This document shows positions 257-59,416 of a DNA stretch of 64,000 nt, in pieces. Position numbers and translations under genes: made by a program. Source of the stretch: Lepidodermella squamata (lineage: Eukaryota; Animalia; Gastrotricha); NCBI GenBank assembly GCA_047495785.1, contig JBLDXI010000009.1:3224001-3288000 (forward strand), written 5' to 3'. The notes under the pieces were generated by a model that saw nothing but the letters and a program-made list of their open reading frames with translations, searched no databases and was not told the DNA's origin. Positions within the stretch are counted from its first letter, which is position 1, and every line of letters begins with the position of its first letter.

Positions 257-1981
257 ATGCCGAATGACAGCCAATCGAGCTTTTTCACAGTTTTCGACAT
301 TACCGTCGTGTTCCTCGCTCTGCTAGCCAATAGCTGTATTTTAAAGGCCGTACTCAAATGCCATTTCAATTTGACCGGCTACAGACGTTTCCTCATCAGC
401 TTGATCGCAGGAGACCTATACTTCGTGAGTCACATTTGTTAATAAGTTGATTTCGAAAAACTGCCATCCTTTAGTGTGGGGTCAATGTGTTGACCTTTCT
501 ATTCCAGCTGCTAGTCGATCTGAGTGCGACTGATTCGACTCGCCAGCTGAGTGCAGTTTTGGATCATGTATATTTCAAATGTTGGGCTAATATTCTACGC
601 ACTCTGCAATTGGTTGGATTCTTCCTGAACTTGCTCAATTTGTGCGGCATGAGTGCGGACCACTTCATCGGTGTTGTGTACCCAATCAAATACAGATATG
701 TGAGTTCATTATAGGACTGAAAGGTTTAAGGGTGAAGCTTCGAATTAATTTCAGATTATGAGTAAATCCGCTGCGAGGCTCGCTGTAGCTGCGGTTTGGG
801 TCTTTTCCTTCCTCTTCGGTCTGTATCTAATAATTGATCAGATGAAAGTAATGCGATCAGCGTTTTTCATTTTTTCAGCTTTCGTTGACTTACTTATCAA
901 AGCGATCACTTTGAACAGAACTTCTGATACTGTCGTAGCAAACCAGAACGATTTTTTACCTCCTGAGGATCTTACTAAGCCATTCTTTCAAAATTCTCAT
1001 CAAAGTCGAGATGAAAAGTTAGCATTTCTACTTGAAATGCTCCAACGAGAAGACGAGAGTTCTAAGGAAATCGGTATATCATTCAAACTAGCTTTTAGAG
1101 CCATTTTAATTTACTATAATAGAAGCTTGTATATTCCATCATGATACTAAAATGTGGTTCGAGTGCGTAATCATCTCGTTAGCCATCGTATGCGGAACGT
1201 TCCTCGTAATCTGTTACACAGTAGTGGTCAAAAGAGTCTCAGATGCAACTCGAAAAAACTCTTCGACTAAAAAACTCATTGGAACAACGGTACTGCTCAT
1301 TGGCGTCTTCGTTGTCTGGTAAATTTTGAGCTGTAAGATGACTGCTGGAATTTTAATCTCTTCAAATTCAGCTGGATTCCTTTTGTAATCTGGGAATTAA
1401 CCATGTATGTGATCTTCAAATCCGGAAGCGCTACGTCAAATTACAGTCCGATGGAAATTCCATACAAGGAGCAGCTATTGTCTAAGTTTGTCTGATTCGA
1501 TCACAGAGCGGCTTTTCTTTGAAATATCTGTTACTAGATCCCTGCTGATCCAGCAAATTTTGAGCTCACTTCAGCGGACCTATCCGTTAATTGATCCGAT
1601 CATTTATGCCGCTCGCATGCCTTCAGTTCAGCAGTAAGTTGCACATTTTCAAAAGCTTCCTTTCATGTAAATTAAATTTTCTTAAGGCAGATTCTGGTCC
1701 GTTTTGTCCGGCTGTTTCCTTGCTGCACTAATTTGTGCCTCAAGTTTCTAAGCAAACAGTCACACAAATCATTGCTGACCAGTTCAAACAACTTTTTCAT
1801 GTCAAAGACTAAATCTGGAAACTCACTCTCTGGGCTCAGTTACCGCGAGGGGGTGTTCAATATTAGGAGCCAGGCTGAGCAAAGTGTCGATCTCAAACCG
1901 GATATCGGTCCCACGTCTCCGACTGAGAAGCAATATTATTACAAGAATAATTTGCACTTGGGCACTTCCCACGATAGTTGA
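257..1981 (+). CDS. Class A orphan GPCR, cluster member 1 (multi-exon)
   Basis: ATG 257 (MPNDSQSSFFTVFD). TM1 'LALLAN', TM2 'LIAGDLY', TM3 'NLCGMSADHFIGVVYPIKYR', TM5 'KMWFE...CY', spliced CWIPF, TM7 DPIIY. About 50-nt GT-AG introns (e.g. 425-474). Confidence 0.9.
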
Positions 1982-3085
1982 GGATATCGATCGCAAAACT
2001 GGACCTAATAATGATGACGTAGAAATAATAATGAATGACGAATAATTCAGAATAAAATTTTTACAGACTATACATTGAGAGCACACATATTTCAATATGT
2101 GTATTAAATCTAATTCGAGAACGCTCTCATGAGAGAAATGCTTAGAAATGCACGATAGATTGGATTGCTACAAAATTGAATTTGTCTTCGCACCTCAAAT
2201 CTATTTCATCTGCTTTTGTTTCAAGGATGTGCCATTTAGACCCCAGCAGATAACAAAGTCAAAATCGCACCTTTTTTAATTTGGTTTTATATGCCTCTCC
2301 TCCGCAAGATTTAATAAGCCCCGAGTTCTTCATTATATTTTCGATTATAGTTGGAAAACATGATTCCCCTGGGGTCATTGAAATGCCCTTTCCCAACCGC
2401 AGAAAAAAAACAAGGTATCCCGTAGTGATTCATTACTTTACTTTTATGGAGTCCAGACTTGATTGCAGCGATAACAAAAAGGAAGCAGAAATAATTGCCG
2501 ATAAAACCACGCTCTCTGTAGTGCGCATACGCGATGCACTCGCGCCTCATTTATCACGCGGTGCATGACGAACCGGTGCCGAGCTTTATAGCAAAAATAT
2601 ATAAAAAAACTAAACATCATCATCCTTCATTTAGCAACCAGGATATCTTTCTCGAATGGCGGAAAATCAATAAAAAATTACGGAAGCCGTTTAAGCTCGC
2701 GAGTTTGCATATATTTCGTTGTACCTACAAGCCCTGACTTGTGTGGGATGATTGTTGGCTAACCTCCATGTGAACTCTGCCAAGCTTTAATAATATTGTA
2801 GTGTAAATCGTGAATATTAGAAAAAATTGTCACTCTCGCTCGGACTTTCTGCTGCACTATAGAAAGGAAACATTTTACGCCATGTGACTAGAATGCTTTA
2901 CTAAAGCAAGTACTTAAGAAAATCAATTGTAATTAGTTCAACTTCGCCATTCCCAAATCTATGCAAATATATAAAACAAACACTCGATTAAAAGGATTGA
3001 GATTGCGTACAAAGGAGTATTTCATTTACATACAGACGTGGTGTCGTAGCTTTGAGTTTAATTTTGTAGATATGCCTTGCCCAAG

Positions 3086-4908
3086 ATGATACAATTTAAC
3101 GAAGGCCCGCGTGGATCCTTCATTTTCTACGATATTTTCGTTGTTGCCCTTGCTCTTGTCGCGAATCTGGCAGTATTTATCGCGTTATCCAAGGGAAAAT
3201 TCGCACCAACGTCATACCGAAAGTTGCTAATCAACTTGAGCCTTTGCGACGCTTACATCTCCGTAGTCAATGCCGCTACATTGTTCTATCAAATCTCAGT
3301 CCTTGAGTCCTCAAGCGACTCTAGTGGGTCGGCTGAAACAGCGTCTGAGTCAAGTAGAGTCTCAGGATGCGGAGCAAATGTTCTCAAAACATTGCAGTTA
3401 GCTGGGCTCTTCGCTAATCTCTTCAACTTGTGCTCAATGTCCATTGATCATCTTCTAGGCGTGGTGAGTTCAATTTTCATACTTACTCAGGCAATTCGCT
3501 AAATCTGCTTTTATATAGATGTGTCCGGTGAAATATAGAAGCGTGAGTTGGTGTGGTGGATTTAGCGGTTTTTTTCAACGTTTCCTAATCATCACAGCCT
3601 CTCAGTGACCACGTTGCAAGCGCCCTTGTTTCGACGACTTGGATTCTCTCATTTGCAATGGGTATGGCTATTTTGACATGAACTTTGCTCACCCAAAAGA
3701 TTCAATTTTTCAGCCTTCGCTGACATACCGGTTAATTTGTTCATTTATGCGGAAAGACAGCCGATCAGCATGCTTAATTCCAACAACACTCGTGGTAGCT
3801 CTATCAAATTCTTCACCTACCAAAATCAAACGCGAATGAGTAAGTTGCGATTAATCGGTGAATATTCCAAAGAAAACCGACCGATTTTTAGAGCTTACTT
3901 ATAAATCCGGACCTAGTCCAACTGCTCGTCCTATCTTTCCAACAAAATCATTCATACCCGCGCCTCCTTTTAAGACTGAAGTCGTATTCGAGGCGAAAGC
4001 GAGGAGATCTGAAAGAATTCTGGACGATTTTTTATCCGCAGTTGCTGCTGCTCAAGCTGACGCAAATTACACATCGCAAACCGTCAATTTGAATGATTTT
4101 CAAAGGAAAAACTTGCTCAACGAAACTCTCAGTCTACTTGACCGCGATCCAGTGGATTCTGTTAACAATCATGTTGCGCCATTAGGATCTTCATACTGCA
4201 ACATTTTCTCTGTTAAGAGGTTCTGGTTTGAATTGTGCATCATCGCGATGGTCGCTATATGCTTCCTGATGCTGGTCGTTTGCTATACAATAATCTTTTG
4301 CCATGTTTCTGGAAGATTCATGGATTCAACTGGGAAACGAACCCAGAAGCTCATACGAACAACTATGGTATTTTTAGGAGCTTTCATATTATGGTAAACA
4401 CTGTTGTATCTTTAATTTATCAAAATTGTAAGATCTATTTTGTCTTTCCTAGCTGGATTCCATTTGGTGAGTCAAAGCTCGGAAATTCACACCTTTATTA
4501 ATTGAAATGTTTTAGTATTATTTGAATTCGTTCTATTTTTGTCCTCATCAATGGATGCGAATTTCATAGCGAATGATGATCTACCGAGTTATTTGCTCAT
4601 TGAGAAAATTCTGCGATCTTTGCTGATTACTTATCCCTTTTTGGACCCTATCATTTACGCTTGTCGAGTTCCAACAGTCAGACAGTGAGTTCAATCGCTC
4701 TCCAATAGCAATGTTCCAAATATTATCAAACGTTGTTCCCAGGTTTTTCCAGAAGAGTGCATGCGAGGCTATTCTGGGTTGCCGGAATGCTGAACTGAAA
4801 TCTCCCCGAGCGAGCAACCTGGGTGTTCAAGAAAACGGCAGCGCTTCGAAAGCTCTGATCGGCGAAACTTCGCAGCAAATCAATAGGAAACGAGATTCAG
4901 ATCCATGA
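3086..4908 (+). CDS. Class A orphan GPCR, member 2 (ECL2 about 150 aa)
   Basis: MIQFNEG...; 'NLCSMSIDHLLGV', 24-nt micro-exon MCPVKYRS, 'KRFWFE', 14-nt exon 4453-4466 carrying (C)WIPF, LDPIIY. Confidence 0.9.
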
Positions 4909-5916: not shown

Positions 5917-7642
5917 ATGCTCGCATATTACGACCTGATCGTGGTAAACCTTGCAATTCTCGCGAACATTGTCGTGCTAGTTGCTGTCAATCGAAGTAAA
6001 TTTTTACCACAGCAAATTTTCTTCAGATACTTTCTGACATCGCTGGCATCATGTGATTTGTTCGCCGCGACTGTTAATCTGACAGCGATGATTTACGAAT
6101 GGTATCGTCAAATCAATGAAATTGTAGCAGTGAGCTGCGGAGCAAACGTACTAAGAACCCTGCTACTTTTCGGCTTCTTCGCCAACTTACTCAATCTCTC
6201 AGCGATGAGCATAGACCATTTCTTCAGTGTGGTGAGTACTTTGCGTTAAGGTGACGCTAAATTATGTCTGAACTTATGTTCCCTTAGATCTTCCCAATCA
6301 GATACAGAAACGTAAGATTGTTCAGGGTTTCCTGCGACTTGTTGTAGTTTATTGTTTTTCCAGACGATGACAGAGACGTTGGCTAAGTCTTGCATAATCG
6401 CTGTATGGGCTGTTTCGTTCAGCTTTGGTTAGTTTATGAAACCTGTCAAAAACACAATTGTTTCACCATCTATTTGCAGCCTTTGTGGACATACCGGTGA
6501 ACATCTTGATCTTCCAAGACCTTTCAACGTCTTTTAAATTACCTGAAAACAATCTGCGAAAAAGGGAGGCTGTAACCTCGATTGACGAAAACGATTCGGC
6601 AGAAGTCGACCTGTATATCTTCGAAATGGTTTTTAGAATCTTCAGTTAACCTTCATCAATTTTCAGAGACTTCGGCCCTCTATTTGGCAGGCCTTCCAAT
6701 GGGAACCTAACTCTAACCTCACCGAGGACACTACATGATCTTCTAGCTGAGCTACAGAGAGATGATGAGCTACAGCCTCTAGACGCTTGTACATTTTTCT
6801 CTGTCAAAAAGCTGTGGTTCGAAATGTGTGTTCTCGTGTTCGTCGCTGTTTGCTTCTTGCTCCTTGTGCTCTGCTATACAGCAATCTTTATCAAAGTAAC
6901 TAATTATACGTCTTTAGGGCTCCATTTATAGTTATGGATTTTAGGTATGTACAAGTAGATTTGACTCGTCCGGCAGGAGAGCGAGAAGAGTCATTGCAAC
7001 CACGCTGATTTTCATTGGGGCATTCACGACATGGTAAGGATCACGATCTTGTTCTATCACTTGTCTGATTTTTCGATTTTAGCTGGATGCCGTTTATGAT
7101 TTTCGAATTTGCGTCTTTCTTCGTCTTCCAAAACTCACATGCTGCCCGAAATTCCGAAAGCAATTACTTCAGGTACTTAATTTCTCTACCCCTGTTGATT
7201 TTTGCTGAATGACTGATGATTCTTTAGGAATCTGTTGGATTTATCCGCCTTCTTCAACTCATTAATGCTTAGCTACCAACTTTGCGATCCAATAATCTAT
7301 GCTGCTCGAGTTCCAGCGGTTCAAGAGTAAGCGTACAGAAAATTAATAGGAGTGGAACGAATATAGGATTTGTTTAGATTCATCGTTGGACTCATTTGCA
7401 AATGCTTGCCATGCTTCGAAAGTCTGAACAGACTGAGATGTCGGTGTCAAGATATCGCCATTAGGGAAATGAATCGATCGAGTGCACGTTTCAGCTCATT
7501 CAGCGGCATTGGCATCCTGAAAAAGCAGAATCTAGCGAGCACAGTGGATAATGTACAGCCGGAAATGATACACCTTAATGCCGACTATCAACTAACGACA
7601 CGACCTTTGAGTGTCTTTGAGGACATTGGAACTCCTGTTTAG
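5917..7642 (+). CDS. Class A orphan GPCR, member 3
   Basis: MLAYYDL...; 'NLSAMSIDHFFSV', micro-exon IFPIRYRN, 'KKLWFE', CWMPF, CDPIIY. Confidence 0.9.
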
Positions 7643-11485: not shown

Positions 11486-13333
11486 ATGAATGTTTTGGGG
11501 ATTCACCCTTACAACTACTTCATATACTTCGACTACTCGATCGTAGCTTTGGCATTGATAGCCAATTCTTTCGTCCTATGTGCTATAATGAGATGTTCAG
11601 CTTTCAGCAAGCAGGTTTTCTACCGTCACTTCCTTATGTCCTTAATTGCCGCCGATATCTACATCACCGTTGTCAACATCGTAACGCTGTTTCATCAAAT
11701 CGCTCAAAATTACCCAACCACTGCTGGCGGAATGCTCCAGTACAAGATGGTTGACGTGGAATCGCCATTTTACTACTTCAAATGCGGAGCTAATATCCTT
11801 CGATCAATGAGACTCGCCGGATTTTTCGGTGAGTTTTTCACCCTTAATAGCTACAGAAGATGGCTGAAACTTTCCTTTTCCAGCAAACTTGCTCAGTTTA
11901 TGCGGAATGTCACTCAATCATTTTCTTGGAGTGGTTTGTAGTTAAAATCAGTAAAGGCGATTTGTAATTTTAAATTTTTATTTTGCAGATTCACCCGGTG
12001 AAATATCGACACGTAAGTCACCAGTTTTCCAACATATTAACTTGCCATGAATACCCTTCTCCAGCTTATGAGTCGCAATGTTGCTCGACTGTCCGTGTTC
12101 TTTGTTTGGTTCGCAGCATTTTCGCTAGGTTAATCTTCAAATTCCACTATAAGATGGACTATTTCATTCAATTGTTTTCCCTCCAGCGATGATCGACATC
12201 CCAATAAATATGATGCTCTATGAAGATATGTCAAAGAGCTTCGAGGATATTAGCGATGAAGGTCTTTTCACTTGGTACAGATTGACATATTTAACCTAAC
12301 ATTTTAGCCAAGGCCGTAGTTGCGAACGAAAAATGGGGAGATCCGATGGATGCAATCATGCTACACTCTAGCAGCTTCGATTCCAAATCAAGCGATGTGC
12401 ATGCTTTGATGTACGACGACGAAGAAGAAATGAAAACTGCGTCAATTACCGATTCCCCACATTCGACAACCCCTCGAAATCACGCTGAAGTGTTGGACAT
12501 GATGTTTGCCCGCTTGGCAGAGGAAGAGCGAGCTAGACAAGCGCTCTACCACGATCCATGTACATTTTACTCCCAATCAAAGATGTGGTTCGAAATTTGT
12601 GTCCTGACGCTAGTTGGCGTCACCGCGATAACTCTTGGCATGTGCTATGGTCTAATTGTCCGTAAAGTCAGTCAATTTCCTTAATTTTAACCTCCTTATA
12701 TTGTCTTGTCTATTCCAAAGCTCGCCCAGGTAACGAAAAACGGAGGCGAAATGTTAGGCCGTAGCTCGAAAAAGTCGATTTTCACAACTGTCACCCTGAT
12801 AATTGCATTTGTTTCCTGCTGGCTGCCTTTCATGACAGTAAGCCACCGTAATAATTTTCACTGAATACGTTTTGACAGTCCGATTCCCATAGTTTGAAAT
12901 GGTAATGCTCATTATTTTCCACAAGAACAGTGGGCAAGTAAGCCCTGACAAATCAACGGAAACCCTCGTCGCTCAGTCCTTTTTGGTGCAAAGCTTCCTC
13001 AACAGCACTCTGATGCTCTACCCCCTCATCGACGCCTTGATCTACTCAGCAAGAATACCGGCTGTCAAAAAGTGAGTCCCGTGTTGTGCCCTGGTATATT
13101 GGGACTATTATTGACGTTTTAAATGCAGCATAATTATCGAGAGGTTCCAGAAACTATTACCGTGTTGCGGCAAGCATTGTAAGCGTTTCGTTTCGAGTAA
13201 CCAAGTTTCCTCGGGTGACAGTGGCGCTGTCAATAATGCCCTTGAGAATGGAGCTACCCTGCTCGAGTTAGCACCCGCTACTTCACTGTTGGATGAGCAT
13301 TGCCGTACTGCCCGAGAGGATCCATTTCTATGA
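11486..13333 (+). CDS. Class A orphan GPCR, member 5 (NHF and DALIY variants)
   Basis: MNVLGIH...; spliced 'SLCGMSLNHFLGV', micro-exon IHPVKYRH, 'SKMWFE', unspliced CWLPF, IDALIY. Last exon ends ...EDPFL* at 13333. Confidence 0.88.
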
Positions 13334-13756: not shown

Positions 13757-15864
13757 ATGCTCGATAGCTCGCTCGCCCTGCCGAAGAATGTTACGAACGA
13801 GATGCAGGTGATGCTGACAAAGATGTACTTCATCTCCTACTTCGACTACGCAATAGTCATCCTAGCCATGGTTGCAAATATCATTATCCTTATATCCGTC
13901 ATACACTGCCAACTCAGACTGCCGGGTTACCGAAGGTTTTTGATCAGTTTAAGCGCCGGCGATCTCTACATTTGTTTCATCAACTTGCTAACTCTGTTTT
14001 ATCAAGTCGTTATAACGCCATCGCCTAGCAACGGATTCTCACAGCAGCTGGGCAACTTTACTGGCCATATTGACGAGGATCCGAACAACGGCATAGCTCT
14101 CACCTGCTTTGCAAATCTTCTGAGAGCCCTGAAATTAGCAGGTCTTTTCACAAATTTGCTCAACCTTGTCGGCATGAGTGCTGATCACTTTTTCGGCGTC
14201 GTAAGTGGACTTGATAGCTTTACGCATGAAAAAATTGCCTTGTATGGTTGCAGGTTTATCCAATCAGATATCGATACGTAAGTTTTAAAAATAGAAAGGT
14301 CCTCCTTAACTTTTTGCTATTTTTCAATGTGTGTTTTTCCAGCTCATGAGTAAAAACAGAGCACGCCTGCTAGTCGTAGCGATATGGATAGTTTCATTCA
14401 CTCTACTTCTTCTCGACATACCGATAAATGTGGCTCTGTATTACATCACAAGTCTGGGATCGAATCATCCACAAAGTGACTTTATGAATGGCAACGAAAT
14501 GCATTTCATGGGCCTTGCAAACGCATCTCATGGAATGCTTCCCAGCAACATTCGCGATCGAATCTACTCTCGCTACGGCTTCAACGCCACAATTAAAACT
14601 CGCCGAAACGTGGACGAGTTGCGGGTTATTCTTGATAAAGTCGACCCTGGCTCAGCTGTCCTGATAGAACAGATTATAAACGGGACAACGGAGGATGACG
14701 AAGAAGAGCTTTTCGCGTCAGATAGGCACCACGCACCGTTAGTTGTCTGAAACTAGGACAAATAGAGAAATACGCATATACCTATCTTTTAGCACTGATT
14801 TCGATGCGAATGAAATTCTTAACAAAATGCTGCTAAAGGTCAAAGCCGAGGACGAGAATGAGCGTGAGTTTTGCACGTTCTTTTCGAGTGGCAAAATGTG
14901 GTTCGATCTGTCAATCATCGTACTCGTGTTTCTCTGCTTCGTTATCATGACAATTTGCTACGGCATCGTGCTGAAGCGGGTCACGCGCCGGATGAATGAT
15001 CCGGTTTTGGCTGGTCATCGTAATCGGAAGCTTATCCTTACTACAATGATGTTTCTTGGCTCATTCATGATTTGGTAAGGCTCCAAATTAATTACGACCA
15101 CGCCACAAAGCGAAGAATAACAACTTAATCTTTGCTATATATTTCTCGTATTACAGTTGGCTTCCACTCATGGTTTCCGAATTCGTCCTACTGCTCATCA
15201 TTCAAAATGGACATCTACCAGGCGAGAGGCAAAATGAAATAAAAAAAGAGTTTTACAGGTGAGTTGATTCACGATAGTCGAAAAACCGTCATGAATAATT
15301 CATTTCTCAAGATTTTACATCGTTGACCGGTTCTTCAATTCATTGATGATGACCTATCCTCTCATAGGTTTGACTAGCCATTTCTTCTTTAAAAAAATGC
15401 TAACTGTTCAAATATCAGATCCAATTATCTACGCTGCAAGAATTCCAGCAGTTCAGCAGGTGATGTTGATGTTCATTTCTCAATGGATGCCTTGCTTTTC
15501 GCACCTGGCCTCGCGTTACCTGAACAAGCATAACCAGCGGCTTATAATGGCTCGAGGATCCATAGCCATAGCTTTAGAGCCAGCTCTTTCAATTATGACG
15601 ACAACAACAACCGCCAATGCCCTTCATCAAACTCCGGAACAAAGGCGGCGAGTGAATAGCACCTCCGCCGCAGCTAGATCTAGCATTTTCAGTAGCTTCC
15701 GCCAGCCGAAAGTGCCGGCGAGGCGGCAAAATTCATGGTGTACAGGATCTAGGAATCCACATTCAGTGACCCATATGGTTACTGCCGGTCCTGTAAATAA
15801 TAGAAGATTCTCAGATGAAAATGTTCAAACAGAAAATATCAGTGAGAGGACTTCCAGCGAGTGA
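13757..15864 (+). CDS. Class A orphan GPCR, member 6 (long ECL2 and long Ser/Thr-rich C-tail)
   Basis: 'NLVGMSADHFFGV', micro-exon VYPIRYRY, 'GKMWFD', CWLPL, DPIIY. AATAAA near 15892. Confidence 0.9.
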
Positions 15865-19318: not shown

Positions 19319-21209
19319 ATGGCATCAACGGTGAATAGCATATTCACGTACTTCGATTCGTCGATAATCTTCCTATCAATCGTGGCCAACTGCTTCGTTC
19401 TTATTGCTGTCGTAAAATCTAACCTGCAACTATCCGGTTACAAACGCTTCCTAATCAGTCTAGCCGTAGGAGATCTTTTCATCTCCATTGTCAATGTGTT
19501 GTCAATTTTCTACCTAATTGTCATGTCAACAATGTCAGGAAGTGCTAATATCACCACCGCCGTGCCTTACTCAATTTTTATGACTTGCGGCGCCCAGGTG
19601 TTGAGGACCCTGAAGTTGGCCGGATTCTGCACAAACCTCCTCAATTTGTGCGGGATGAGCATTGATCACTTCATTGGAGTTGTAAGTATCTTGCATCAAT
19701 TGCGGAACTAATTATGAATTAAATCTGTTAATTTCAGGTTTATCCAATGAAATATCGATATGTAAGCCTTTTCTCTCGTGAAAAATGCTCCATAATATTT
19801 TAAAATGTTTTAAGGTGAGTCGTAAAGTTTCCAGGATAGCCTTGATAATTATTTGGACATTCTCATTCGCCCTGGGTATTTTTAAAAAAGGTTAACTTAA
19901 CACTCAATCATTATATGGTCTTCCTTAGCTTGCCTTGATATTCCTATAAATCTGATTCTCTACCACGCGGCTTCAAGTCAAGATCTGATACTGGACCCCG
20001 TAAACGCGACTAAAGCCCCACCCAGAAATAAAACAGCCGCGTCAGAGTTGGAACTCGAATTGGAAGATGAAATCAACCTTCACAGCTTGATCGAACAACT
20101 AGGGTCTTCTTTTGACTCACCGAGCTACTATGACGATGGCATTTCGTTCAACGCAACAAATTCGTCGATTATACTAGCGCCGCTTGTCTCGACTAGGACT
20201 AACGCGACATCGACAAAAAATTCATTAAGGCGGATACTTGCCCTACTCCAGGAAGAGGATCGTAAACTGGATACCGAAAAAGGGGCTTGCACTTTCTTCG
20301 ACGTCGGAAAAATGTGGCTCGAGATCTGGGTCATTGGCCTGGCACTGCTCAGTTTTGTCTTTCTCATCTTTTGTTACGGTGTTATTTTTCGCAAAGTCTC
20401 CGATCGAGAGATCATGAAGAATACTATCAAGAATCATCATGCTACCGGGAAATTTATTTGGACCACAATGATTTTCCTCGGCGCCTTTTCATTCTGGTAT
20501 GCGAATAAGATTTAGTACTGACTTTTCGTGAGCTTGCCTCATTACAGCTGGCTGCCGTTTATGCTGAACGAATTCGTGATGCTTCTCCTCTATCAAGCCG
20601 AGCAGAGTGCGTCAGGAGATCGAACTTCAGTGAATTTTGATCGTTTCTTCCTGGCGGGACATATTCTCAACTCGGTGCTCATGTGCTATCCCCTAATAGG
20701 TAAAAATACCCTTAGAAACAGACGTTCATGAAACATTAGGATGATTAGGACATGGGTTAAACGAAAGGATGTGCGGTTTACGATAAGTTGTTATTCACCC
20801 CCTCCCTCATGAAGTTCTCATGTCTGCGCATGTTCAAGGGTCCTTAGGCCTTAGTTATTTTGTTCCTTAGAATGAAATACCTCTTGTTCTGCTTTCAGAT
20901 CCGGTCATATACGCTGTTCGAATACCTGCCGTTAATTTGTAAGTTGTGATTATTTCCGCCCTACTACTGAATTTTCTAGAACCGTATTGTTTTTATAGCT
21001 CTTTAAGGACTCAGTTGGCGAAGTTGTCGTGTGGGCTGATGAAAGCACCTGAGAGACGGCACATTCCTCTCGGACAACCGACCCTCAGCCATCCCACGCA
21101 GTCCAACAGAATTTACGAGAACGGCTCCCACGCGCAAAACGGCGATTGCTCAGGCGATTCTCTACTCTTAGACAGGCCTCGCCCGGTTCCAGATACACTG
21201 GAAACATGA
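19319..21209 (+). CDS. Class A orphan GPCR, member 7
   Basis: 'NLCGMSIDHFIGV', micro-exon VYPMKYRY, 'GKMWLE', CWLPF, DPVIY. One longer intron of about 200 nt at 20700-20898. Confidence 0.9.
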
Positions 21210-21826: not shown

Positions 21827-22291
21827 ATGGCGAGAATCATGACGCTGTTACTTGTATGCTTGCTGGTCCATGCATTCAACCTTGTATCAGCCAACAACAT
21901 CTCACAACTTCGGTTGATTAGAACCGGCGATGCCGATTTATCTGTTCCAGACCTTAACGATTTCGAATCCAAAATGGAAGGTAAGTATCCTGCTAATTGC
22001 TTGATTTTTTTAAATTGATGGTTGGTTTTCACTACAGCTAGAATACGTGCTCTTATTCGTCGCCGAGAAGACTCGAAAGCAATCGAACTTTTGCGGATAA
22101 TGTTCAAACTAGAGAAGAGGAAACAAATGAAAGAATGCGGCCGGTTGTTATCGGAATCACTGTGCAAGAACAACAGCCCAGATCCCTTTTATTTGTGGGC
22201 GAAACTTGCAGCGCAAGATATGACTAAAGATCCGACAGATGGTATGCGGCAAAGGATAATGTCAGGGCTGCGTATGCTATCAAGAAAGTGA
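21827..22291 (+). CDS. Small secreted protein family A, member A1 (135 aa; exons 21827-21980, 22038-22291)
   Basis: Signal-like MARIMTLLLVCLLVHAFNLVSA; phase-1 GT-AG intron; KRK then CGRLLSESLCKNNSPDPFYLWAK; clear paralogs elsewhere in the window. Confidence 0.88.
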
Positions 22292-37802: not shown

Positions 37803-39559
37803 ATGAATACTAAAGGAATGTTCGTTTACTTTGACTGCACCATCGCTTCCGCAGCAATTATTGCGAACTGCTTCATACTGTCTGCCGTAGCTCGAGCTAG
37901 GCTGATGCAGAAGAACTACCGGTTATATTTGATCAATCTAGCCGCTTGCGACTTGTTCAGCTCTGTGAGCACCCTTCTAGCTGCATTTTGCTTCCTGTTT
38001 TTCGAAGATCTTCTGACAATGAAAAATCAAATCTTCGGCTGTGCCGCGAATGTTGTTCGAAATTTGCAATTGATTGGGTTCTTCACAAATCTTCTCACTC
38101 TTACTGGTAAAGCATTACTGTCTTTCTATTGAATTTTTACAAAAATCTTTATCAGGAATGTCTGTGGATCTTTACTTGAGCGTGGTAGGTTTCATTGCTA
38201 ACACCAAATTTCTGAGCTCATTTTTGTTATTTTAGGCGCATCCAATAACTCATAGAAATGTTAGTTTCTTATTCTGGTTAATTTCCGATTTTAATGTAAA
38301 ATAGTAACAGAGTGTTACTAAGACGAAAACTGGTATCGCATTAGTTGTTATTTGGCTAGTATCTGCAGCGATAGGTAAATTTAAAAATAACGAGAAGCTT
38401 TTCAAACTTATTTCATAAGCAGCTTCGGCCGAGTTCTTCGCTAATATTCTGGTATCCAGTGAGCCCAGCCAGATAGGAAGCACTGATAGTAACTTTTATT
38501 CACCTAAGTAAAGTTTTGTTGCAAGTTGTACTTCAGCAAACAGAACCATGAAAACTTGCGATCTTTCGAAGATTAATTCGGCGGAATTTTCTCATGTCCT
38601 GTCAAGTGGCTGTCAGCTGACCAACGGCGACTACGAATCATCAAGCGAGGACTATTCAAGCGGCCAGTTTCATCAAACAGCAGAAGAACTGAATGCTTCT
38701 GATGACTCGTCTATCACCCATCGCGATAGCGAGGAGATGAAGCAAGTATTGCAGAGAATTTTCACCGCAGTGCGGCAAGAACAGCGCGGTGGAATCATCG
38801 AGTCTAGCATTTGCTCGGATGCGCCACATGGTGAAGTTTGGCTCGAGTTACTAGTCATCAGCTCGGTCATAGTTTCCTTCATATTCCACATTGTTTGCTT
38901 CGTTATGGTCTGCAAAAAGGTTAGAATTATTAATCAGCAAAACTCGGCACTAAACCCTAGAATTTTTCCAAATTACAGGCATCTAAAAAGTTTGACTCGA
39001 AAGGCCGCCATGCTAAGAAATTGATGGTTACCGTCTTCATATTTTTGAGTGTCTTCGCAATATGGTCAGCTTGTTTTTTTAAGTTTTCCGATGATTTTTT
39101 ACATTTTTTGTGAAGCTGGCTGCCAAGAATGACATTTGAATTCGTCATGTTTCTCAAGTTCAGTTATCACAACGACGCTGAGGATGTCCTGGATGATGCA
39201 GATCGATATGCAGCTCTTAGCAACTTTAGATAGTAAGAACTCATTTTATTCAGAAAGTTGTAATTCTGACCTTGACCCTACCTAGTTTCTTCCTGATTGA
39301 AAATTTGTTCACCTCAATTCACATACTCTACTTGATAGCCGATCCGATCATCTACGCAGCAAGAGTGCCCTCAGTCCGAGTGTTCCTTCTCAAGAACTTG
39401 ACTATTTGCTTTCCTCGATGGAAAAAGAGACAACTCTTCGAGAGGCGTGGTGCTTTAATCGAGCGGAAAAGACTTTCGACGCATCCGCGTGCTTGCGAAA
39501 CTAGCCGCCAGTCTGGGACAAGTCGTGCTAGCGATATGAGGCGTGGTTCTTGTGGCTAA
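37803..39559 (+). CDS. Class A orphan GPCR, member 14 (most divergent; DLY, CWLPR)
   Basis: Spliced 'TLTGMSVDLYLSV', micro-exon AHPITHRN, 'EVWLE', WLPR, ADPIIY. Confidence 0.85.
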
Positions 39560-40145: not shown

Positions 40146-42351
40146 ATGAACGCCGACGATTTCTTGATCAACTTCGACTTTGTTATCATCGGCCTGGCCG
40201 GTGTCGCTAACGTCTGCGTTCTACTGGCCATAGTTCAATGCAAGTTTCAGCTGGTTGGCTATCGGCGATTTTTGATCAGCCTAACCCTCGGCGATCTCTA
40301 CATGTGCATTGTCAGTGCTCTGAGCCTGCTATGCCAACTACATATCAACTCGCAGGAGGACGAGCCATCTCGAGCTATGGATGCAGCTGATACGAACGAT
40401 TTCCTAACTAACTGCAGTGCTAATATTGTCAGAACGCTGAAACTGGCAGCTTTTTGCATAAACTTGCTCAATCTGTGCGGTATGAGTTTCGACCACGTTA
40501 TTGGCATCATTTACCCGCTCAAATATCGATATGTACGTTTTTCGATTTTCGACCCAATAACAGCTCTTATAAGTTTTTTCGTTCCAAAGCTGATGACCAC
40601 TGTATTGGCTCAAAGTATCGCTCCAGCTGTATGGATCGCCTCCTTGGCATTTGGTAATTTAATTCGTGGGATTGGCACTTATTTTCCTATAGGGTTAAAA
40701 GCTGCTCACACAATGCACCAATAAGATTCCAACTAAAATTTGAATTCCTTCGGAATTTTTTATATTTATTTTTTCAATAGCATCGTTCTGTAATTTTCCT
40801 GATAGTACACCAAATTTGGGTTATTCCACCTTAAGACAAAAAGACAAAAAGATATCACAAACTAGTTATTATTCTGCTTCAGTGATTCGTGAAATTAGTG
40901 CACATGTCATGTCGGCAAATAACCAGTTATTTTGAGGGGGACAATGCGACCTTTGATTCCGTGCCTTAATTATACTATTCCATGAGTCTAAATGCGACCA
41001 TTTTTGACAGATTAAAATTAACAGTGTGGGATGTTAACTTGGTCATGCGGATGATTCTTTGCACTAAGATTGCTTTTTAAATGTTTAGTATTTGTCGAAG
41101 TTCCTGTAAATGCAATCAAGCAAAGTCTCGGCGGTCGGAAGAAGGGCATCGAAATGAAGCAAGACTATTTGGAGGACTATGACGAGGCGTATCTGAAGAA
41201 AATTCTCGCGAAGTCTTATGAAGACCTTCCAGAGGAGCCTTCTTTCAATAATTCTTTCAGGTAAAACAAATATGAAAACTATAATCAACATGAAATCCTT
41301 ACTCTAGCCTTAGTTCCGACGTAACTTTGGAGAAGAGCGAGACAAAAGCGTCTCTGCATCGGATGTTGTCAATGCTGAGTGATGACGAGGAGTATTTCGA
41401 CGAGGATGTTTGTCCTTTGATAAGCTCAGTGAACAAAGTCTGGTTCGAAGTGTCTGTGATTGGGCTAGCTATAAGCTGTTTCATCTTTCTCGCGGTCTGC
41501 TATGCTTTCATCTTCCGAAAGGTTTTTCCTCATTTTAAAACCAAGAACTAATAATTTTGGAGATTTCTGTAAACTAGGTGTCTACAAGACTGGGAGGATC
41601 CACAAGTCGACAAAATCGAAAATTAATTGCTACTACTTTCATGTTCCTCGGTGCTTTCATTATCTGGTAATTCGTTTGCTAAAGGACAGATTAAGATTTT
41701 TATCCCAACATCTTCAGCTGGTTTCCTTTTTTGGCCTACGAGTTTGTCACGTTCTTGATATATCGCCATAACTCTGCTGATTCACCTAAGAACGAACAAG
41801 AGCAGGAGGAAAAATTTTCCGAGTAAGTTCCCGCCATTTTTCGTTTCAATGGTTACGTAACCTCGCCTTCCAGATTCATATTTGTTGGCACGATTCTCGG
41901 TTCCGTTTTGATGCTTCAACCCCTGATTGGTATGTTTTGGTGAATTTCCTTCGTTTTTCTGATTTTGGAAATTGCAGACCCTATTATTTATACGGCAAGA
42001 ATTCCTGCCGTTCAACAGTTGCTAAAGCATCAACTGAACCGGATTCTTCAGTTTTGCAAGCTACGGAAGCAAACTAATGACAAGTTGCATCGAAATGGAA
42101 CCATGCAATCAGTATCCAACTGCAATCGATCTTCTGTAATCATCAATAAGCCAAGGCCGGCTCTACCACCTTGTGAAACTCAGTCAACTGCGATATCCAC
42201 ATCGATCGATTCCGGAATCGCATCCCCAGCTAAAACTTTGATTCGTGATACTTACTATTATGCTTCGACAATAACGCGGAAGAGTGAAGATAGGACTATC
42301 ATCACCGAGATGGATGACGCTATAATTTGCTCTCAAGCACAAGCTTTATGA
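40146..42351 (+). CDS. Class A orphan GPCR, member 15
   Basis: MNADDFLINFD; 'NLCGMSFDHVIGIIYPLKY', 'NKVWFE', CWFPF, DPIIY. Enlarged intron of about 435 nt near 40653-41088. Paralog of member 13. Confidence 0.9.
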
Positions 42352-42404
42352 TAATTACATTTTATTTGATCTTAAATGACATACTGAAACTATTACAACA
42401 AAAA

Positions 42405-42862
42405 CTACTGGAACGCTGCTGCTTGTTTCAGGCTTGCCAACACTTTCTGCTTCAAAGCGTTCGCCGCTTCGTTGTCGTTGTAAGACATTGCAGCGAGTCT
42501 CGCCCAGAGATTGAATGGCTTGGGGCTTCGATTTTTGCAGAGATCAGAAGAAAACAGCTCTTTGCATCTATCTCCGCGCCGTTTCTTCTCGCCAGCAATC
42601 ATCCACTTGATGATATTCATGGCCTTCTCAGCTTCACCTTCGCGCAGCCGTGAAATAAGCTCATCTGAAAAAGCGAAAACTTCGGTCAAGCCGTCGTAAA
42701 AAGTAACAATATAATACCAATTCTGCGATCTCCGGCTGCCGAGAGCTGAGGAGCTGCTACGTCTTCCACATCGCCTTGAACAGCGATCGGCGCCGATTGG
42801 GTGATTTCGAACACGGCGAGCAGAAGGCCAAGCGTGAAGCAAATAGAAGAATAACGCACCAT
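42405..42862 (-). CDS. Small secreted protein family A, member A2 (134 aa; exons 42862-42718, 42664-42405)
   Basis: MVRYSSICFTLGLLLAVFEITQSA signal (different frame from the track ORF); 53-nt phase-1 intron; KKRR then CKELFSSDLCKNRSPKPFNLWAR. Confidence 0.88.
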
Positions 42863-43405: not shown

Positions 43406-43728
43406 CTATGAAAAATGTTCTCTCAGTAGTGGGATTATTTGATTAGCGGAGCACCAACGTCGCAACAATTTCACTCGCTTTCTAAAAGATTCTGCAGCCA
43501 TGCATCGAAGGAGTTGATAGTTATCTAGCTATAAGTCAAAAGAGGTACGATTTTGCGTTGAAAAGTCCAATATCTTACTCTAATGCATGTCGAACACAGC
43601 TTTGCGGTAAGCTTCTGAAACTCAACTGCTGCTTTTTCGATTATGTGATTCTTGAGCTTCCGAGTTGAAGATGGATTTGGGCTGAGAAGTACCATCACCA
43701 TGAAACAAGTTGGAATTTTCCTATGCAT
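43406..43728 (-). CDS. Small secreted protein family B, member B1 (90 aa; intron 43578-43529)
   Basis: MHRKIPTCFMVMVLLS... (weaker signal); KAAVEFQKLTAKLCSTCIR|LDNYQLLRCMAAESFRKRVKLLRRWCSANQIIPLLREHFS*. Confidence 0.82.
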
Positions 43729-47482: not shown

Positions 47483-47794
47483 TCAGGGTGCCAATAGATG
47501 AGCGAGTGGGCACCATCGGCGTAGTAGCTTTACGCGATTGAGGACTGTCCTCGACGAAAGGCATTGAAATAGTCGATGATTGTCGTTCTGAAATGTTAAC
47601 GAAGGATAGATTAAGGAGGACCAAATACGAAAAAGCAAGTATCTCACCTTTAGGCATGAAACGCAAAGTCTTGCGGTAAACTTTTTGAACTCCACAGCCA
47701 TCGTCTTCACTTCTTCGTACCTTTTTGGCAACTCAGCGCAATTTAGTGACGAAAACGTAAGGAAGAAGAAGCACCAGATTACAGCGCAGCGCAT
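47483..47794 (-). CDS. Small secreted protein family B, member B2 (83 aa; in-frame 60-nt intron 47647-47588)
   Basis: MRCAVIWCFFFLTFSSLNCA signal; KTMAVEFKKFTARLCVSCLK|NDNHRLFQCLSSRTVLNRVKLLRRWCPLAHLLAP*. Confidence 0.87.
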   Translation of the reverse strand: MRCAVIWCFFFLTFSSLNCAELPKRYEEVKTMAVEFKKFTARLCVSCLKVRYLLFRIWSSLIYPSLTFQNDNHRLFQCLSSRTVLNRVKLLRRWCPLAHLLAP

Positions 47795-51457: not shown

Positions 51458-53109
51458 ATGATGCCTCATCACAAAGGCTATTTGATTTACTACGATTTAG
51501 CTGTTGTAATCTTTGCGGTCTTGCTCAATTGTCTGGTGCTATTCGCGGTCAGCAGCGTGAAAGCTCGAATGAAAGCTATCTTTTATCGACATTTCTTACA
51601 ATCTTTGGCGGCATGTGACCTGCTCTCCTCGGCTTTGAGCCTCTGCTCCATTGCCTATCAACTGACTCCGCCACCGAGAGCAAACTTCGGCTTTGGTTTC
51701 GATTTCGCTCAGTGCGTTGTAAATGTGTTGAGAACCCTGCAACTAAGCAGTTTTTTCATTAATCTACTCAATCTCAGCCTAATGACTGCTGACCACTATG
51801 CGAGCGTAGTAAGTTTAGTTTCAACCCTCCTGGAAAAATGTGTAATTATCTCTTCTTAGTTCAAACCCGTAACCTACAGAAATGTAAGTGTTTGGTATAA
51901 TCTATTCGCATATGATATAAACGAGATCTATTGCAGAACATGAATAGTAGTCGTGCTTGTCTTTCATTTATTCTCATTTGGGTGCTTTCATTTGTCTTTG
52001 GTGAGCTTAAATTTAATGAATATATACCTAATACTGATTATTGGGAACAGCTTCCATGGATATCATAATGAATCTGGCCGAGATTCGTGGTAACAACAAT
52101 ACAATGAAGGTGGAGACAGAGGATGTGTTCAACAGTTCTGAATTCAATTTGCTATTCTCTGACGATAACGACTCTTTCATACAAACGGAGCAAATCATCG
52201 ATTTAGGGAACACAAGCCTTAGGTTAGGTCATGTCATACTTGATCTTAACGGAATTTAAACATCTGAATTTCATTTTAGGCTTTTCGAAGTGAGAAATCA
52301 GAACGAAAGCGTTGAGATCCTGGATCGTTTCATATCTCAAATCCAAGAAACTGAAAATCGGATGGAATCTCCCTGCAATTTCATTACCATTAGGCGGATG
52401 TGGTTTGAGATCTTTGTTCTGGCTCTAGCAGCAACGTGCTTTCTTCTCTTAATGGTGTGCTATGGAGCCATTTTCAGAAGGGCAAGCGCCTATGGGCTAA
52501 ATGACTTTTGTATGAAACTAATTATTTCGATCAAGGTTTCTACAAAATTGAACTCTTCCGGAAAGCGGCATACGCAGCTGATGACGACCACGTTGATCCT
52601 AATTACCTTTTTCGCTTTTTGGTAAGATGCCCTTCTTACTTTAATCGAACGCAATTGAAAATGCTATCTTCAATAGCTGGATGCCGATAGTAATCTTCGA
52701 ATTCACAATGTTCATCATATCGCAAAACGCAACGACTAATCTTGAGGATTTCCCAGGGCAAAAGAGCTTCCTAGCTATACAAGCATCCTTATCATCCTTA
52801 ATGCTAACCTACAAACTGTTGGACCCGCTTGTTTACGCTATTAGAGTACCAGAAATCAGACGGTAGGTGTAATTTTGAAAGGAAGGGTGGTTAATGTGTA
52901 TTATTTTTCTTGCTAACAGATGCGTCAATTCATATATCGTCAAATGGTTCCCGTTCTGCTCTCCCTATCTAAAAACATTCCCACCTGGGTCAACCAATGT
53001 CGCTAAAATTGTGAAAGGCCCTGCGAAAATTGCAAGCAGTGTCTTGCAGCCTGTGGACATTGGAGCCAAAGATTTCAAACACATCGACGAAGAGGATGCT
53101 ACAGAATGA
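51458..53109 (+). CDS. Class A orphan GPCR, member 16
   Basis: 'NLSLMTADHYASV', micro-exon FKPVTYRN, 'RRMWFE', CWMPI, LDPLVY. Closest to members 3 and 4. Confidence 0.9.
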
Positions 53110-53643: not shown

Positions 53644-54081
53644 ATGCAACTTTCTATGCGGATCTCTATATTTGTCATCGTAATATCTCTTACAGAGCTG
53701 TTCGTTTCAACCAACGCGAGCAAGGTCATACCAGCGACTGAGGTGGAGCATTTTGAAGCTAAACTTACAGGTACTGTTTTCGAAGATCGGAAAAGCCTTG
53801 TTTTACAGACTTTTTTACGATTTACAGCAAAGCTTCGTGACCTTCTAAATCGCAGAGAGGATGAGAAAGCGATGGATATCCTAAGACTAATGTACCAAAT
53901 CGAGAGGCGGAAACAGAAGGATAAATGCGGCCAATTATTATCATCAGCCTTGTGCAGCAACAACAGCCCCGATCCATTCTCTTTGTGGGCGAAAATCGCA
54001 GCGAGAGATTTAACGAAAGACCAATCGATGAGCATGCGCAGCAGATTACTCGGCGGGCTTAACTTACTCCGTCATCAGTAA
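53644..54081 (+). CDS. Small secreted protein family A, member A3 (126 aa; in-frame 57-nt intron 53771-53827)
   Basis: MRISIFVIVISLTELFVSTNA signal; RRK then CGQLLSSALCSNNSPDPFSLWAK. Closest to A1. Confidence 0.88.
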   Translation: MQLSMRISIFVIVISLTELFVSTNASKVIPATEVEHFEAKLTGTVFEDRKSLVLQTFLRFTAKLRDLLNRREDEKAMDILRLMYQIERRKQKDKCGQLLSSALCSNNSPDPFSLWAKIAARDLTKDQSMSMRSRLLGGLNLLRHQ

Positions 54082-54193: not shown

Positions 54194-56084
54194 TCATTTC
54201 TCTAATAGAGCATCGCCAGAGTTACGATCTGAGGGCGAACTGAAAGTTCTGCTGTCATCATTCATCGCGATTTCGGAGCTGTTCAATTTACTGAGGGCGG
54301 TGAATGTTTTACTCCGGTTCACCGGTGTCCCCAAGTCCATCGTTGCCGACCGTGTTCGAAAACGCTTAGCTGTAAGTAACCCAGTTGCCCATCGATACAA
54401 GCATGGGCATTTCGCTACACGGGCGAGTATTATGTGCTGAATGGCCCGGATTCTCACGGCGTAGATTATCGGGTCTGAAATTCAATGGCATTTTGTTCGA
54501 AATAATCAACAGATAATCCTAGGGGATCACGAACCTATTAGCGGATACATCATTAGCAGCGAGTTGAAAAACTTATCGACCAGAAAAAATCTACAACAAA
54601 TAAAGTGCGCTCAGTTTTTGCGATAAAAATAATTAATAACCTACCTTTGATACGACTGAGACCTCGTTTCTTCATCGACAGACTGAACTATGACTAATAG
54701 CACGAACTCAGACAGGATGAAAGGCAGCCAACTGTGAACACAGGATATTGAGTTTAGGGAATTACTAGGCCTGTGAAATTTTCCTACCACAGCGTGAAAG
54801 TGCCGAGGAACATAAGGGTTGTCAAGATAATCTTTCGAGTTCGATAAATCAATTTAGAGTTCGATTCCCGCAGCCGACTGCTGCTCATGCGTCTGGACGC
54901 GTGTTTGAGGCTAATCCCGTAACACGTGATCATCGAAGCCATGCAGATGAGAACAAGGATTATGATGAAAACATCGAACCACATCTGGCCACCAGAACGG
55001 AAGGCGCATACGCTTTGCTTTTTCGCATCGTCCGCTTCAACTATTGAAAGCATCATATTGATGAGCATTTCATTGTTGCCGTAGCTGGTACTGCAAGAAA
55101 TTAGGTGATCAGCTTATTTTAATACATGAAAAGCTTACTAATTCGAGTTGAGATGAATATCGCTAACATCTGCAGATGTATTGTAGATTTCGTCGAGTAG
55201 CGACTGGTCTACATTTTCTAGAACAATCCCTATGTCGTCACCGGCTCTTCGCCTTACGCGGGAAACGTCAGGATAAGGCGTAGACACAAGAGTAATGAAG
55301 GAGTTGACGAAGAGAACTTCTGATTGCGTAGAATCCCCAGAAATGACTTCGCTCGGAATGTGGGCTAAACTTGAGCTGTTTTGCTTCACTGAGATCAGTG
55401 GAAGGCTTTGCGTTGAGGTTTGAGACAGCAGTAGATTAATCGGGATGTCAAGCAAAACTAAAACAAAGATGAAATCATTTTTCATAAATGCAAAGAGATG
55501 TCTTACCCAGGGCAAAAGATGTGATCCATATCAAAACGGGAGACCATCTCGCCGAATGATTACTCATCATCTGCAGGGAGCATTTTCAAGCCTTCTTTTA
55601 TCAGAAAATACCAAGGAAGAACTTACGTATCTATATTTGAGGGCGTATGTCTGAAAATGATTTTAAACATTATTCGTAATATAGTAAATGTCAAACTCAC
55701 TATGCCAAGAAAGTGGTCGACACTCATACCGACCAGGTTCAGCAGGTTTACGAAGAAGCCTGCTAGTTTCAGTGTTCTCAGAACACTAGCGAGACAGTCG
55801 TAAGTCATAGTTCGAGTATGCGATGCATCGTCTGAATTTACGATTAAAATGTTGTATAGCAGGGTCAGAATGTTAACGAAACATATGTAGAGATCTCCGG
55901 CGCTAAGGCTGATCAAAAATCGACGGAGGCCGACCAGCGAGAATTTGGACTTGATTACTGCTGCCAAAACTACGCAGTTTGCTATCGTGGCGAGGAGCAC
56001 AATTGTGTAGTCGAAATAGATCTTGAAGGTTTGCAACCAAAGCCAAGAAGTCTCATTTTCGGTTGTAAAATTATTTGGGAACAT
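54194..56084 (-). CDS. Class A orphan GPCR, member 17 (inverted; paralog of member 6)
   Basis: 'NLVGMSVDHFLGI', micro-exon TYALKYRY, 'QMWFD', CWLPF, DPIIY. Confidence 0.9.
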
Positions 56085-58051: not shown

Positions 58052-58423
58052 TTAGTGCAATTCAGACAACCGCCTCGAACACGATCGGCGCAAAAGCTGG
58101 GTTCGTTCGAGTAGAGTCTTCGCGATATAGCATCGGCTCCTCGAGATTGAATCGTTATCCTGCAATAAAATTTAACAACAGGATTGCAAATTGTTAACAG
58201 AATGCATTACGTTGTAGCAAGTTTTGCACAGGTCCAGTGTCATTTTGTTGAACTTGAGCGCAAGTTTGCGCATATTTATTACAGATTCGTATGGCATCAT
58301 GGTGTTTTTGAGTTTCGGTACCTCAATCTGAGGAATGGGCTCCGATTGGCCATTGATTATCAAATCAGAAGAAGCTACTATCGTGGTAATAAGTGGCATC
58401 GAACAGATGAGAAAGAAAAGCAT
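58052..58423 (-). CDS. Small secreted protein family B, member B3 (106 aa; intron 58210-58160)
   Basis: MLFFLICSMPLITTIVASS signal; RKLALKFNKMTLDLCKTCYN|DNDSISRSRCYIAKTLLERTQLLRRSCSRRLSELH*. Confidence 0.83.
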
Positions 58424-58928: not shown

Positions 58929-58934
58929 TATAAA
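58929..58934 (+). promoter_or_regulatory. TATA box of secreted gene A4
   Basis: TATAAA about 60 nt upstream of ATG 58992. Confidence 0.5.
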
Positions 58935-58991
58935 CCTGATCTTACAGCCGACCGCAGGTATCCCTCGTATCCTCATTTCCATTTGCGAATC

Positions 58992-59416
58992 ATGAATTTT
59001 ATCTGGTTGATCTTTTTCGTAGCACCGGCTGTTATGGCCATCACATTACCGACTGACTATGCCAGTGGCCGAAACTCGCTCGGCCTAAATGATATAAATG
59101 ATCTTGTTTCCCGATCCACAAGTGAGTTCTGAATTCTAGTTTATAGCCATTCATTCATTTTGGCAAATATTTAGGACGGATCGAATCCCTTATTCGGAAG
59201 GGTGAGGATGCTAAGGCGATGATTCTAATGCGACGAATTATGACAGTCAACAAGCGTCAGCGGCAGGTAAAGTGCACCGAAGCACTTTCCAGTTCATTAT
59301 GCAATAACCTGAGCCCGCAACCGTTCAACTTCTGGGCGAAAATGACAGCCAGGGCGTTTTCAGGTAACGCTGCTAACGAAATGCGCCAGCGGATCATGAC
59401 TGAACTGAATCAGTAA
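58992..59416 (+). CDS. Small secreted protein family A, member A4 (123 aa; exons 58992-59121, 59175-59416)
   Basis: MNFIWLIFFVAPAVMA signal (exon 1 not in the track); 53-nt phase-1 intron; KRQR then CTEALSSSLCNNLSPQPFNFWAK. Confidence 0.88.

Follow-up and report, generated by a model that had tools for sequence, protein, structure and literature searches.

A tandem array of 17 class A G-protein-coupled receptor genes overlaps with genes for small secreted cationic proteins in the gastrotrich Lepidodermella squamata

The window analyzed here, i.e., the whole stretch of 64,000 nucleotides (nt), corresponds to positions 3,224,001 to 3,288,000 (forward strand) of contig JBLDXI010000009.1 in the genome assembly GCA_047495785.1 of the gastrotrich Lepidodermella squamata. 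It has a base composition of approximately 41% G+C and very small introns. In total, 30 genes were found, 17 of which encode G-protein-coupled receptors (GPCRs) of class A that are paralogues of one family, 8 encode small secreted proteins, and 5 are others. The receptor and secreted-protein genes share a stretch of 59 kb. The screening of intergenic open reading frames (ORFs) of the window revealed no further convincing coding ORF. A first-pass annotation had reported 17 GPCRs and 8 secreted-protein genes in about 59 kb, the latter lying between or next to the receptors and both sets being highly diverged yet apparently intact, and had interpreted them as a linked ligand-receptor system. All of these genes could be modelled, the secreted-protein genes hold the positions relative to the receptors that it gave, and all 17 receptor loci yielded intact seven-transmembrane (7TM) proteins of 376-530 amino acids (aa) with 4-9 introns.

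The receptor loci were found by querying the stop-to-stop ORFs with one copy's four main coding blocks, and the exons were mapped using a family profile. Gene models were obtained by splice-aware dynamic programming (combining log-odds of codons, scores for donors and acceptors, and a prior on intron length) with homology anchors; anchors or introns were set by hand for GPCR4, GPCR5, GPCR6, GPCR7, GPCR11, GPCR14, and GPCR15. Sixteen loci are located on the forward strand and one on the reverse strand. Their positions in the window are given below, where TM and ECL denote transmembrane helices and extracellular loops, respectively.

257..1981, forward strand: GPCR1, 470 aa, 6 introns; one TM4/ECL2 intron is possibly retained in the model
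3086..4908, forward strand: GPCR2, 480 aa; the sole copy with a net basic ECL2 (+6)
5917..7642, forward strand: GPCR3, 435 aa
9360..11147, forward strand: GPCR4, 454 aa; a 24-nt microexon was recognized visually and imposed on the model
11486..13333, forward strand: GPCR5
13757..15769, forward strand: GPCR6, 530 aa; sister of GPCR17
19319..21209, forward strand: GPCR7, 472 aa; one intron of 199 nt
23906..25380, forward strand: GPCR8, 404 aa
26002..27474, forward strand: GPCR9, 420 aa
28828..30412, forward strand: GPCR10, 438 aa
30879..32725, forward strand: GPCR11, 515 aa; ECL2 net charge of 0
33771..35529, forward strand: GPCR12, 473 aa
35778..37281, forward strand: GPCR13, model of 376 aa; the C-terminal tail is probably incomplete
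37803..39531, forward strand: GPCR14, 418 aa; the most diverged of the copies (DLY in place of DRY)
40146..42351, forward strand: GPCR15, 486 aa; needs a predicted 435-nt intron at 40654-41088
51458..53109, forward strand: GPCR16, 442 aa; sister of GPCR4
54194..56084, reverse strand: GPCR17, about 505 aa, 7 introns, each present in RNA contigs

Nearly all receptor introns are about 50 nt long (44-90 nt), the exceptions being the 199-nt intron of GPCR7 and the 435-nt intron of GPCR15, which may have arisen by insertion into an intron that was once small. A 24-nt microexon encoding the YPxKYR motif of the second intracellular loop (ICL2) is a recurrent feature of the gene structure. RNA contigs, which carry SMART cDNA adaptor sequence at transcript ends, were placed on positions 53500-59499 of the window and verified the model of GPCR17, the other 16 receptor models being predictions. 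They contained seven GT..AG introns of 48-60 nt in this gene, and the joined exons formed an open 7TM protein. Six of these seven introns were predicted exactly by the splice predictor, and the donor of the seventh was 6 nt off; the alternative donor chosen by the predictor coincides with a junction that is also present in RNA. For the GPCR17 intron 55085-55139, two RNA junctions 6 nt apart were observed (donors 55085 and 55090), one of them with 5 extra letters, representing either alternative splicing or an allele difference. In addition, two joints between opposite strands were found in the RNA contigs within exon 1 of GPCR17 (55838-56058), which could be assembly chimeras or result from antisense transcription.

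The receptors combine a very short N-terminus (1-31 aa ahead of TM1, mean 11) with a long ECL2 (61-141 aa, mean 101), the net charge of which is -7 on average and negative in 15 of the 17 copies, GPCR2 and GPCR11 being the exceptions. These values bear out the earlier description of receptors with almost no N-terminus and large acidic extracellular loops. The ECL2 insert of about 100 aa is placed between TM4 and the conserved ECL2 cysteine and is glycosylatable and, probably, flexible; the loop finishes in a conserved amphipathic helix followed by the Cys. Tyrosine sulphation was considered and rejected as a family feature, its sequence context being found in just 4 of the 17 loops. According to the alignment, the family signature consists of FD..V..LA..AN in TM1, D2.50, the TM3 Cys, DIPIN at the end of TM4, CWxP, and DPxxY in place of NPxxY. 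Among these, D2.50, CWxP, and the TM3 cysteine, together with the ECL2 cysteine, are kept in all 17 receptors. The DRY position reads DH[F/L/Y] (NHF in GPCR5 and DLY in GPCR14) and hence lacks the arginine.

A profile of the TM1-3 exon was searched against 1.84 billion representative proteins and gave 109 matches, of which the top 55 or so were clear family members sharing 30-61% identity with the window copies. The family members that were looked up were all unnamed ORFs on ENA metagenome contigs, and the weaker matches included class A receptors that are uncharacterised, from two annelids, Owenia and Capitella. As judged from these matches, the receptor family appears to be undescribed and otherwise present only as unnamed metagenome ORFs. 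The maximum likelihood (ML) tree contained the clades (GPCR6, GPCR17), (GPCR3, (GPCR4, GPCR16)), (GPCR13, GPCR15), and (GPCR12, (GPCR7, (GPCR11, (GPCR8, (GPCR9, GPCR10))))). Metagenome relatives nested within the window diversity, P0110 and P0117 with GPCR2 and P0115 and P0005 near GPCR6 and GPCR17, which indicates that the receptor subfamilies are older than Lepidodermella squamata. The assignment to class A is based on matches to Pfam 7tm_1 above the threshold for the relatives P0027 (E 2.7e-20) and P0122 (E 2e-11); a single window exon matched the same model below the threshold (E 2.4e-4).

For the full-length relative P0027, the AF2 model was confident in the 7TM core, and its ECL2 was partly helical and of low confidence. 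With this model, Foldseek returned at least 500 GPCR structure matches, the best of which were the melanocortin receptors MC5R, MC4R, and MC3R (E about 1e-8, target TM-score of about 0.8), followed by the receptors for adenosine (A2B), cannabinoids, and LPA. At the sequence level, solved structures were matched weakly (opioid, FFAR2, and somatostatin receptors, E about 1e-6). The melanocortin receptors (MC1R-MC5R, MECA cluster) share the DPxxY variant of NPxxY with the window family, and small secreted basic Cys-containing proteins, agouti and AgRP, serve as their antagonists. However, DRY is retained in them, the TM3-ECL2 disulphide is missing, and ECL2 is very short, whereas the window family, at about 17% identity, has the long ECL2, the disulphide cysteines, and DH[F/L/Y]. 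Melanocortin receptor identity was ruled out on these grounds.

Lineage-specific arrays of class A GPCRs are common. The platyhelminth PROF1 family, like the window family an orphan lineage-restricted rhodopsin-like expansion, is confined to its phylum, was missed by standard annotation, is intronless, and carries the motifs D[R/K][C/M], [F/Y]xxx[S/A]x[P/L], and [N/S][F/G]xx[Y/F] (PMC3261222). It lacks the W of CWxP and the P of NPxxY, whereas the window family keeps CWxP and DPxxY and contains introns; PROF1 membership was rejected on motifs and intron content. The nearest functional analogue of the window receptors is C3aR, which has a short N-terminus, a TM3-ECL2 disulphide, and a flexible ECL2 of about 172 aa with acidic residues needed to bind the small helical protein C3a (PMC10518620). 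C3aR structures were found at ranks 43 and 48 among the Foldseek matches of the P0027 model. The two differ in that the insert of C3aR follows the ECL2 Cys, whereas that of the window family precedes it, and they have no specific sequence relationship. Moreover, C3a is a proteolytic fragment derived from an unlinked gene. An acidic module of about 100 aa in ECL2 instead of the N-terminus is a design otherwise best known from C3aR.

The eight secreted-protein genes comprise four members of family A, three members of family B, and one singleton.

21827..22291, forward strand: A1, family A, 135 aa, phase-1 intron at 21981-22037
33023..33377, forward strand: singleton, formerly called A-like, small secreted protein of 100 aa, intron at 33138-33189; no Pfam match
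42405..42862, reverse strand: A2, family A, 134 aa, intron at 42665-42717; 54 nt from GPCR15, 3' end to 3' end
43406..43728, reverse strand: B2, family B, 90 aa, intron at 43529-43578
47483..47794, reverse strand: B1, family B, 83 aa, intron at 47588-47647
53644..54081, forward strand: A3, family A, 126 aa once the in-frame intron at 53771-53827 is removed
58052..58423, reverse strand: B3, family B, 106 aa, predicted intron at 58160-58210; covered by RNA contigs
58992..59416, forward strand: A4, family A, 123 aa, intron at 59122-59174 seen in RNA; head-to-head with B3, with 569 nt between them

Pairwise matches among A1-A4 had E values from 1e-14 to 1e-32, and their cores are 36-54% identical, A1 and A3 being the closest pair (54%). 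The core includes a strictly conserved 25-aa motif, the N.SP.PF..WA motif, and an invariant C-x8-C, which is the corrected conserved disulphide spacing of the family; a phase-1 intron lies directly ahead of the core in all four genes. RNA contigs cover A3, A4, and B3 and provide splice evidence for the first two, as the 53-nt intron of A4 is an RNA junction and the 57-nt in-frame intron of A3 was derived from loose ends of an RNA contig. Within 53500-59499, the RNA contig depth was highest for A3 and lower for GPCR17, B3, and A4, although contig depth is a poor measure of expression. B1-B3 match one another less strongly than the family A members do and share the pattern C-x2-C-x10/11-C-x16-C and an LLRR.C motif. 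The singleton shows no statistical relationship to family A (E 2.5), and its former label was dropped. All eight genes start with a hydrophobic, signal-peptide-like segment, as estimated by a hydropathy heuristic rather than SignalP, and all eight proteins are net basic (+3 to +10) with basic clusters, as the first-pass annotation had claimed for them.

A search for family A homologues with a single sequence and a four-sequence profile against 5.8 billion clusters found none, and neither did searches of JGI metagenome contigs and the ESM Atlas. The homologue search for family B likewise found none, and Pfam assigned no family to any of the eight secreted proteins. A weak match of A1 to CRF (Pfam, E 0.025) was attributed to amphipathic helices resembling each other by chance. 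Compared with neuropeptide or protein-hormone precursors, families A and B show signal-like N-termini and basic clusters, and these searches placed them with no known hormone. For the A core, AF2 produced a poor helical bundle (pLDDT 63), and a fold search with this model gave no match. An origin of the A core from the receptor ECL2 helix, or mimicry of it, was tried because in both a helix is followed by a run of basic or acidic residues and a Cys; it was rejected at an hhalign probability of 0.35%. A two-subunit hormone formed by A and B proteins, suggested by the adjacent pairs A2/B2 and B3/A4, was rejected as well, about 0.8 such pairs being expected by chance (an estimate) and the orientations of the two pairs being different. 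Families A and B represent new orphan families of secreted cationic proteins.

The DNA reads contained two haplotypes at roughly equal depth and several percent apart. Between 53600 and 59500, the difference amounted to about 4-6% for exons and about 15% for the A4 intron, again at about equal depth, which corresponds to either very high heterozygosity or a recently duplicated copy. The haplotypes were compared for A3 and A4 using a partial variant list. Seven synonymous and three non-synonymous differences were found in A3, and 13 and 5, respectively, in A4, i.e., 20 synonymous versus 8 mostly conservative non-synonymous differences in total, and the A4 intron was more diverged than the A4 exons. 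A3 and A4 are functional genes under purifying selection.

These data bear on one of the possible interpretations of the locus, namely, self/non-self or mating-type recognition, with polymorphic linked ligands and receptors held as haplotypes. The co-occurrence of several ligands and receptors in one region and the presence of two haplotypes several percent apart would fit this interpretation, and the first-pass annotation had likened the locus to the basidiomycete B locus and Brassica SCR/SRK, which also unite several secreted-peptide and receptor genes in one short region. The mostly synonymous differences in A3 and A4 argue against it. Hypervariability of the ligand proteins between haplotypes was not observed for these two genes, the pattern being the opposite of the S-locus type; with the divergence peaking in the A4 intron, it is that of neutral heterozygosity under purifying selection rather than diversifying or balancing selection. 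The fungal B locus encodes a Ste3-type receptor and a lipopeptide pheromone, and SCR/SRK is a defensin-like ligand with a receptor kinase. In contrast, the window receptors belong to class A and are neither Ste3-like nor receptor kinases, and the secreted proteins have predicted signal peptides without CAAX boxes or defensin-like 8-Cys patterns. Moreover, the paralogues are ancient and common to other species. The likeness failed in receptor class, ligand chemistry, and haplotype pattern, and a recognition locus is highly improbable.

As to the interleaving described in the first-pass annotation, A1, the singleton, and A3 do lie between receptors, but the gene order is that of two overlapping clusters rather than a regular alternation. 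Five of the eight secreted-protein genes touch a receptor gene versus 6.6 expected under a random order of the 30 genes (P(>=obs) 0.96), and three have receptors on both sides versus 2.5 expected (P 0.48). The secreted-protein genes are shifted to the right-hand (3') edge of the array (Mann-Whitney p 0.007); six of them fall within 42-59 kb, a part that also harbours the non-GPCR genes, and GPCR1-GPCR6 (0-16 kb) have no secreted neighbour. The co-phylogeny that a linked system should show was not found: the branching of family A is not mirrored by that of the receptors next to its members, with low power given four A and three B genes. The receptors flanking A1 (GPCR7 and GPCR8) and A3 (GPCR16 and GPCR17) belong to different clades, and the long-range receptor pairs GPCR4/GPCR16 and GPCR6/GPCR17 have no matching A gene between GPCR4 and GPCR6.

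Co-location in relatives was checked in eight unique loci with family receptors (about 100 kb), and no A or B homologue was detected; loci L001-L010 were searched for A/B homologues and L011-L014 by a signal-peptide ORF screen only. Most receptor neighbours in the relatives are ordinary genes, including those for RING/B-box proteins, TBC1D23, PLC, transporters, integrin, and complexin.

From these results, we consider it somewhat probable that two lineage-restricted, tandemly duplicating gene-family sets overlap in one gene-dense region. The intact and deeply diverged paralogues, the class A motifs, the lack of excess adjacency, the skew of the secreted-protein genes to one end, the tree mismatch, and the relatives without A/B genes all support this explanation. 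The first set would be an old array made up of the 17 intact receptor genes, paralogues within a class A GPCR subfamily that is undescribed; by analogy with C3aR, these receptors may respond to polypeptides or further cationic ligands from outside the cell, with ECL2 as the capture site. The second set would comprise the eight genes for small, cationic, and mostly helical secreted proteins (four A, three B, and the singleton) found mainly at the 3' edge. The two sets probably share the region through local duplication in a compact genome and not as cognate pairs.

Several points weigh against the overlap of two independent sets. The chance co-location of the A/B genes with the receptors is an assumption rather than a demonstration. 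Small secreted proteins account for 8 of the 13 non-GPCR genes of the window, which is a high density, and their charges (+3 to +10) are complementary to that of ECL2 (mean -7); this complementarity is real but generic. Furthermore, secreted signalling genes were found beside receptors of the same family at two related loci. In L015 (ENA metagenome contig, 17.4 kb), three tandem insulin-like candidates lie between two family receptors at about 9556-13980, a region that is the same DNA as L001 3857-8278. Two of them gave full-length, sub-threshold Pfam Insulin matches (E 4e-4 and 7.5e-3) and contain the B-chain LCG..C and A-chain CC...C........C patterns; the third, interrupted by a sequence gap, has a B-chain-like motif only. 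In L009, a gene at 2568-3008 (also L010 2036-2482) directly downstream of a family receptor encodes a secreted protein of 146 aa that has a TGF-beta-like cystine knot and ends in CGCSA (Pfam TGF_beta, E 8e-6). Secreted signalling genes thus recur beside this receptor family, a hint that it may tend to be accompanied by such genes.

The same observations can be explained by a linked cognate system, in which A and/or B proteins would be endogenous agonists or agouti-like antagonists of receptors of the same array, docking by charge on the acidic ECL2, and the genes would be kept together through ligand-receptor co-evolution or co-regulation. Along with the complementary charges and the hormone-like genes at the two related loci, this explanation is consistent with the position of A1, the singleton, and A3 between receptors, the 54-nt tail-to-tail arrangement of A2 and GPCR15, the C3aR-like architecture, the restriction of both sets to the lineage, and the strictly conserved 25-aa motif of the A core, which, with purifying selection, is expected of a specific binding protein. 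Against it stand the adjacency at the random-order level, the first six receptors without a secreted neighbour, the missing co-phylogeny (of little power here), the lack of A/B genes in the related loci searched, and the number of receptors, 17 versus 7-8 candidate ligands. Insulin-like and TGF-beta-like hormones canonically use non-GPCR receptors; adjacency in the relatives is therefore a poor predictor of pairing. We regard a linked cognate system as unlikely, and the ligand-receptor coupling proposed in the first-pass annotation is a hypothesis of similarly low probability, for which the indirect tests came out neutral or negative. The fuller proposal that A and/or B proteins are cognate ligands captured by the acidic ECL2, which would make the locus a multi-ligand/multi-receptor animal GPCR system, is rather unlikely.

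Alternatively, the receptors might constitute a chemosensory repertoire for exogenous cues, as would further class A tandem arrays specific to one lineage, and the A/B proteins might be unrelated secretory products, such as cationic host-defence peptides or gland proteins. The tandem array, its deep divergence, and the variable extracellular loops are in line with this idea, as are the small size, cationic and helical character, clustering, and orphan status of the A/B proteins and the high RNA contig depth of A3. Yet endogenous signalling is no worse a fit for the conserved helix and Cys that terminate ECL2 and for the single-copy persistence in relatives, and a strictly conserved core motif such as that of family A would be unusual for membrane-active peptides. 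This repertoire is distinctly unlikely as an explanation of the locus.

The five other genes of the window encode a Sar1-like GTPase, a CERK-like protein, a kinase, and two ankyrin-repeat proteins. The Sar1-like GTPase gene (16042-16629, forward strand; Pfam Arf, E 2.7e-54) is located within the receptor array and is intronless, whereas the genes around it carry 4-9 introns each; it may be a retrogene. It is followed by a gene-free gap of 2.7 kb, in which the ORF 16799-17104 (reverse strand) reads as alternating Cys-Val, pointing to a dinucleotide (TG/CA-type) repeat. The kinase gene (48600-50664, forward strand) contains an ORF of 517 aa with a Pfam Pkinase C-lobe match (E 6e-12), after which about 390 aa had no Pfam match. 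Two tandem paralogous ankyrin-repeat genes (60038-60799 and 61331-61993, forward strand), apparently intronless, lie just past the stretch of receptor and secreted-protein genes.

If the A/B proteins and the receptors are not paired, the locus is a case of two tandem gene families overlapping in an ordinary way, and it warns that genes lying side by side in a compact genome provide weak evidence of pairing. If they are, it would be a rare animal case of ligand-receptor linkage, and if one A/B protein proved to activate a neighbouring receptor, the array would offer ready-made ligand-receptor pairs for studying how GPCR specificity diversifies.

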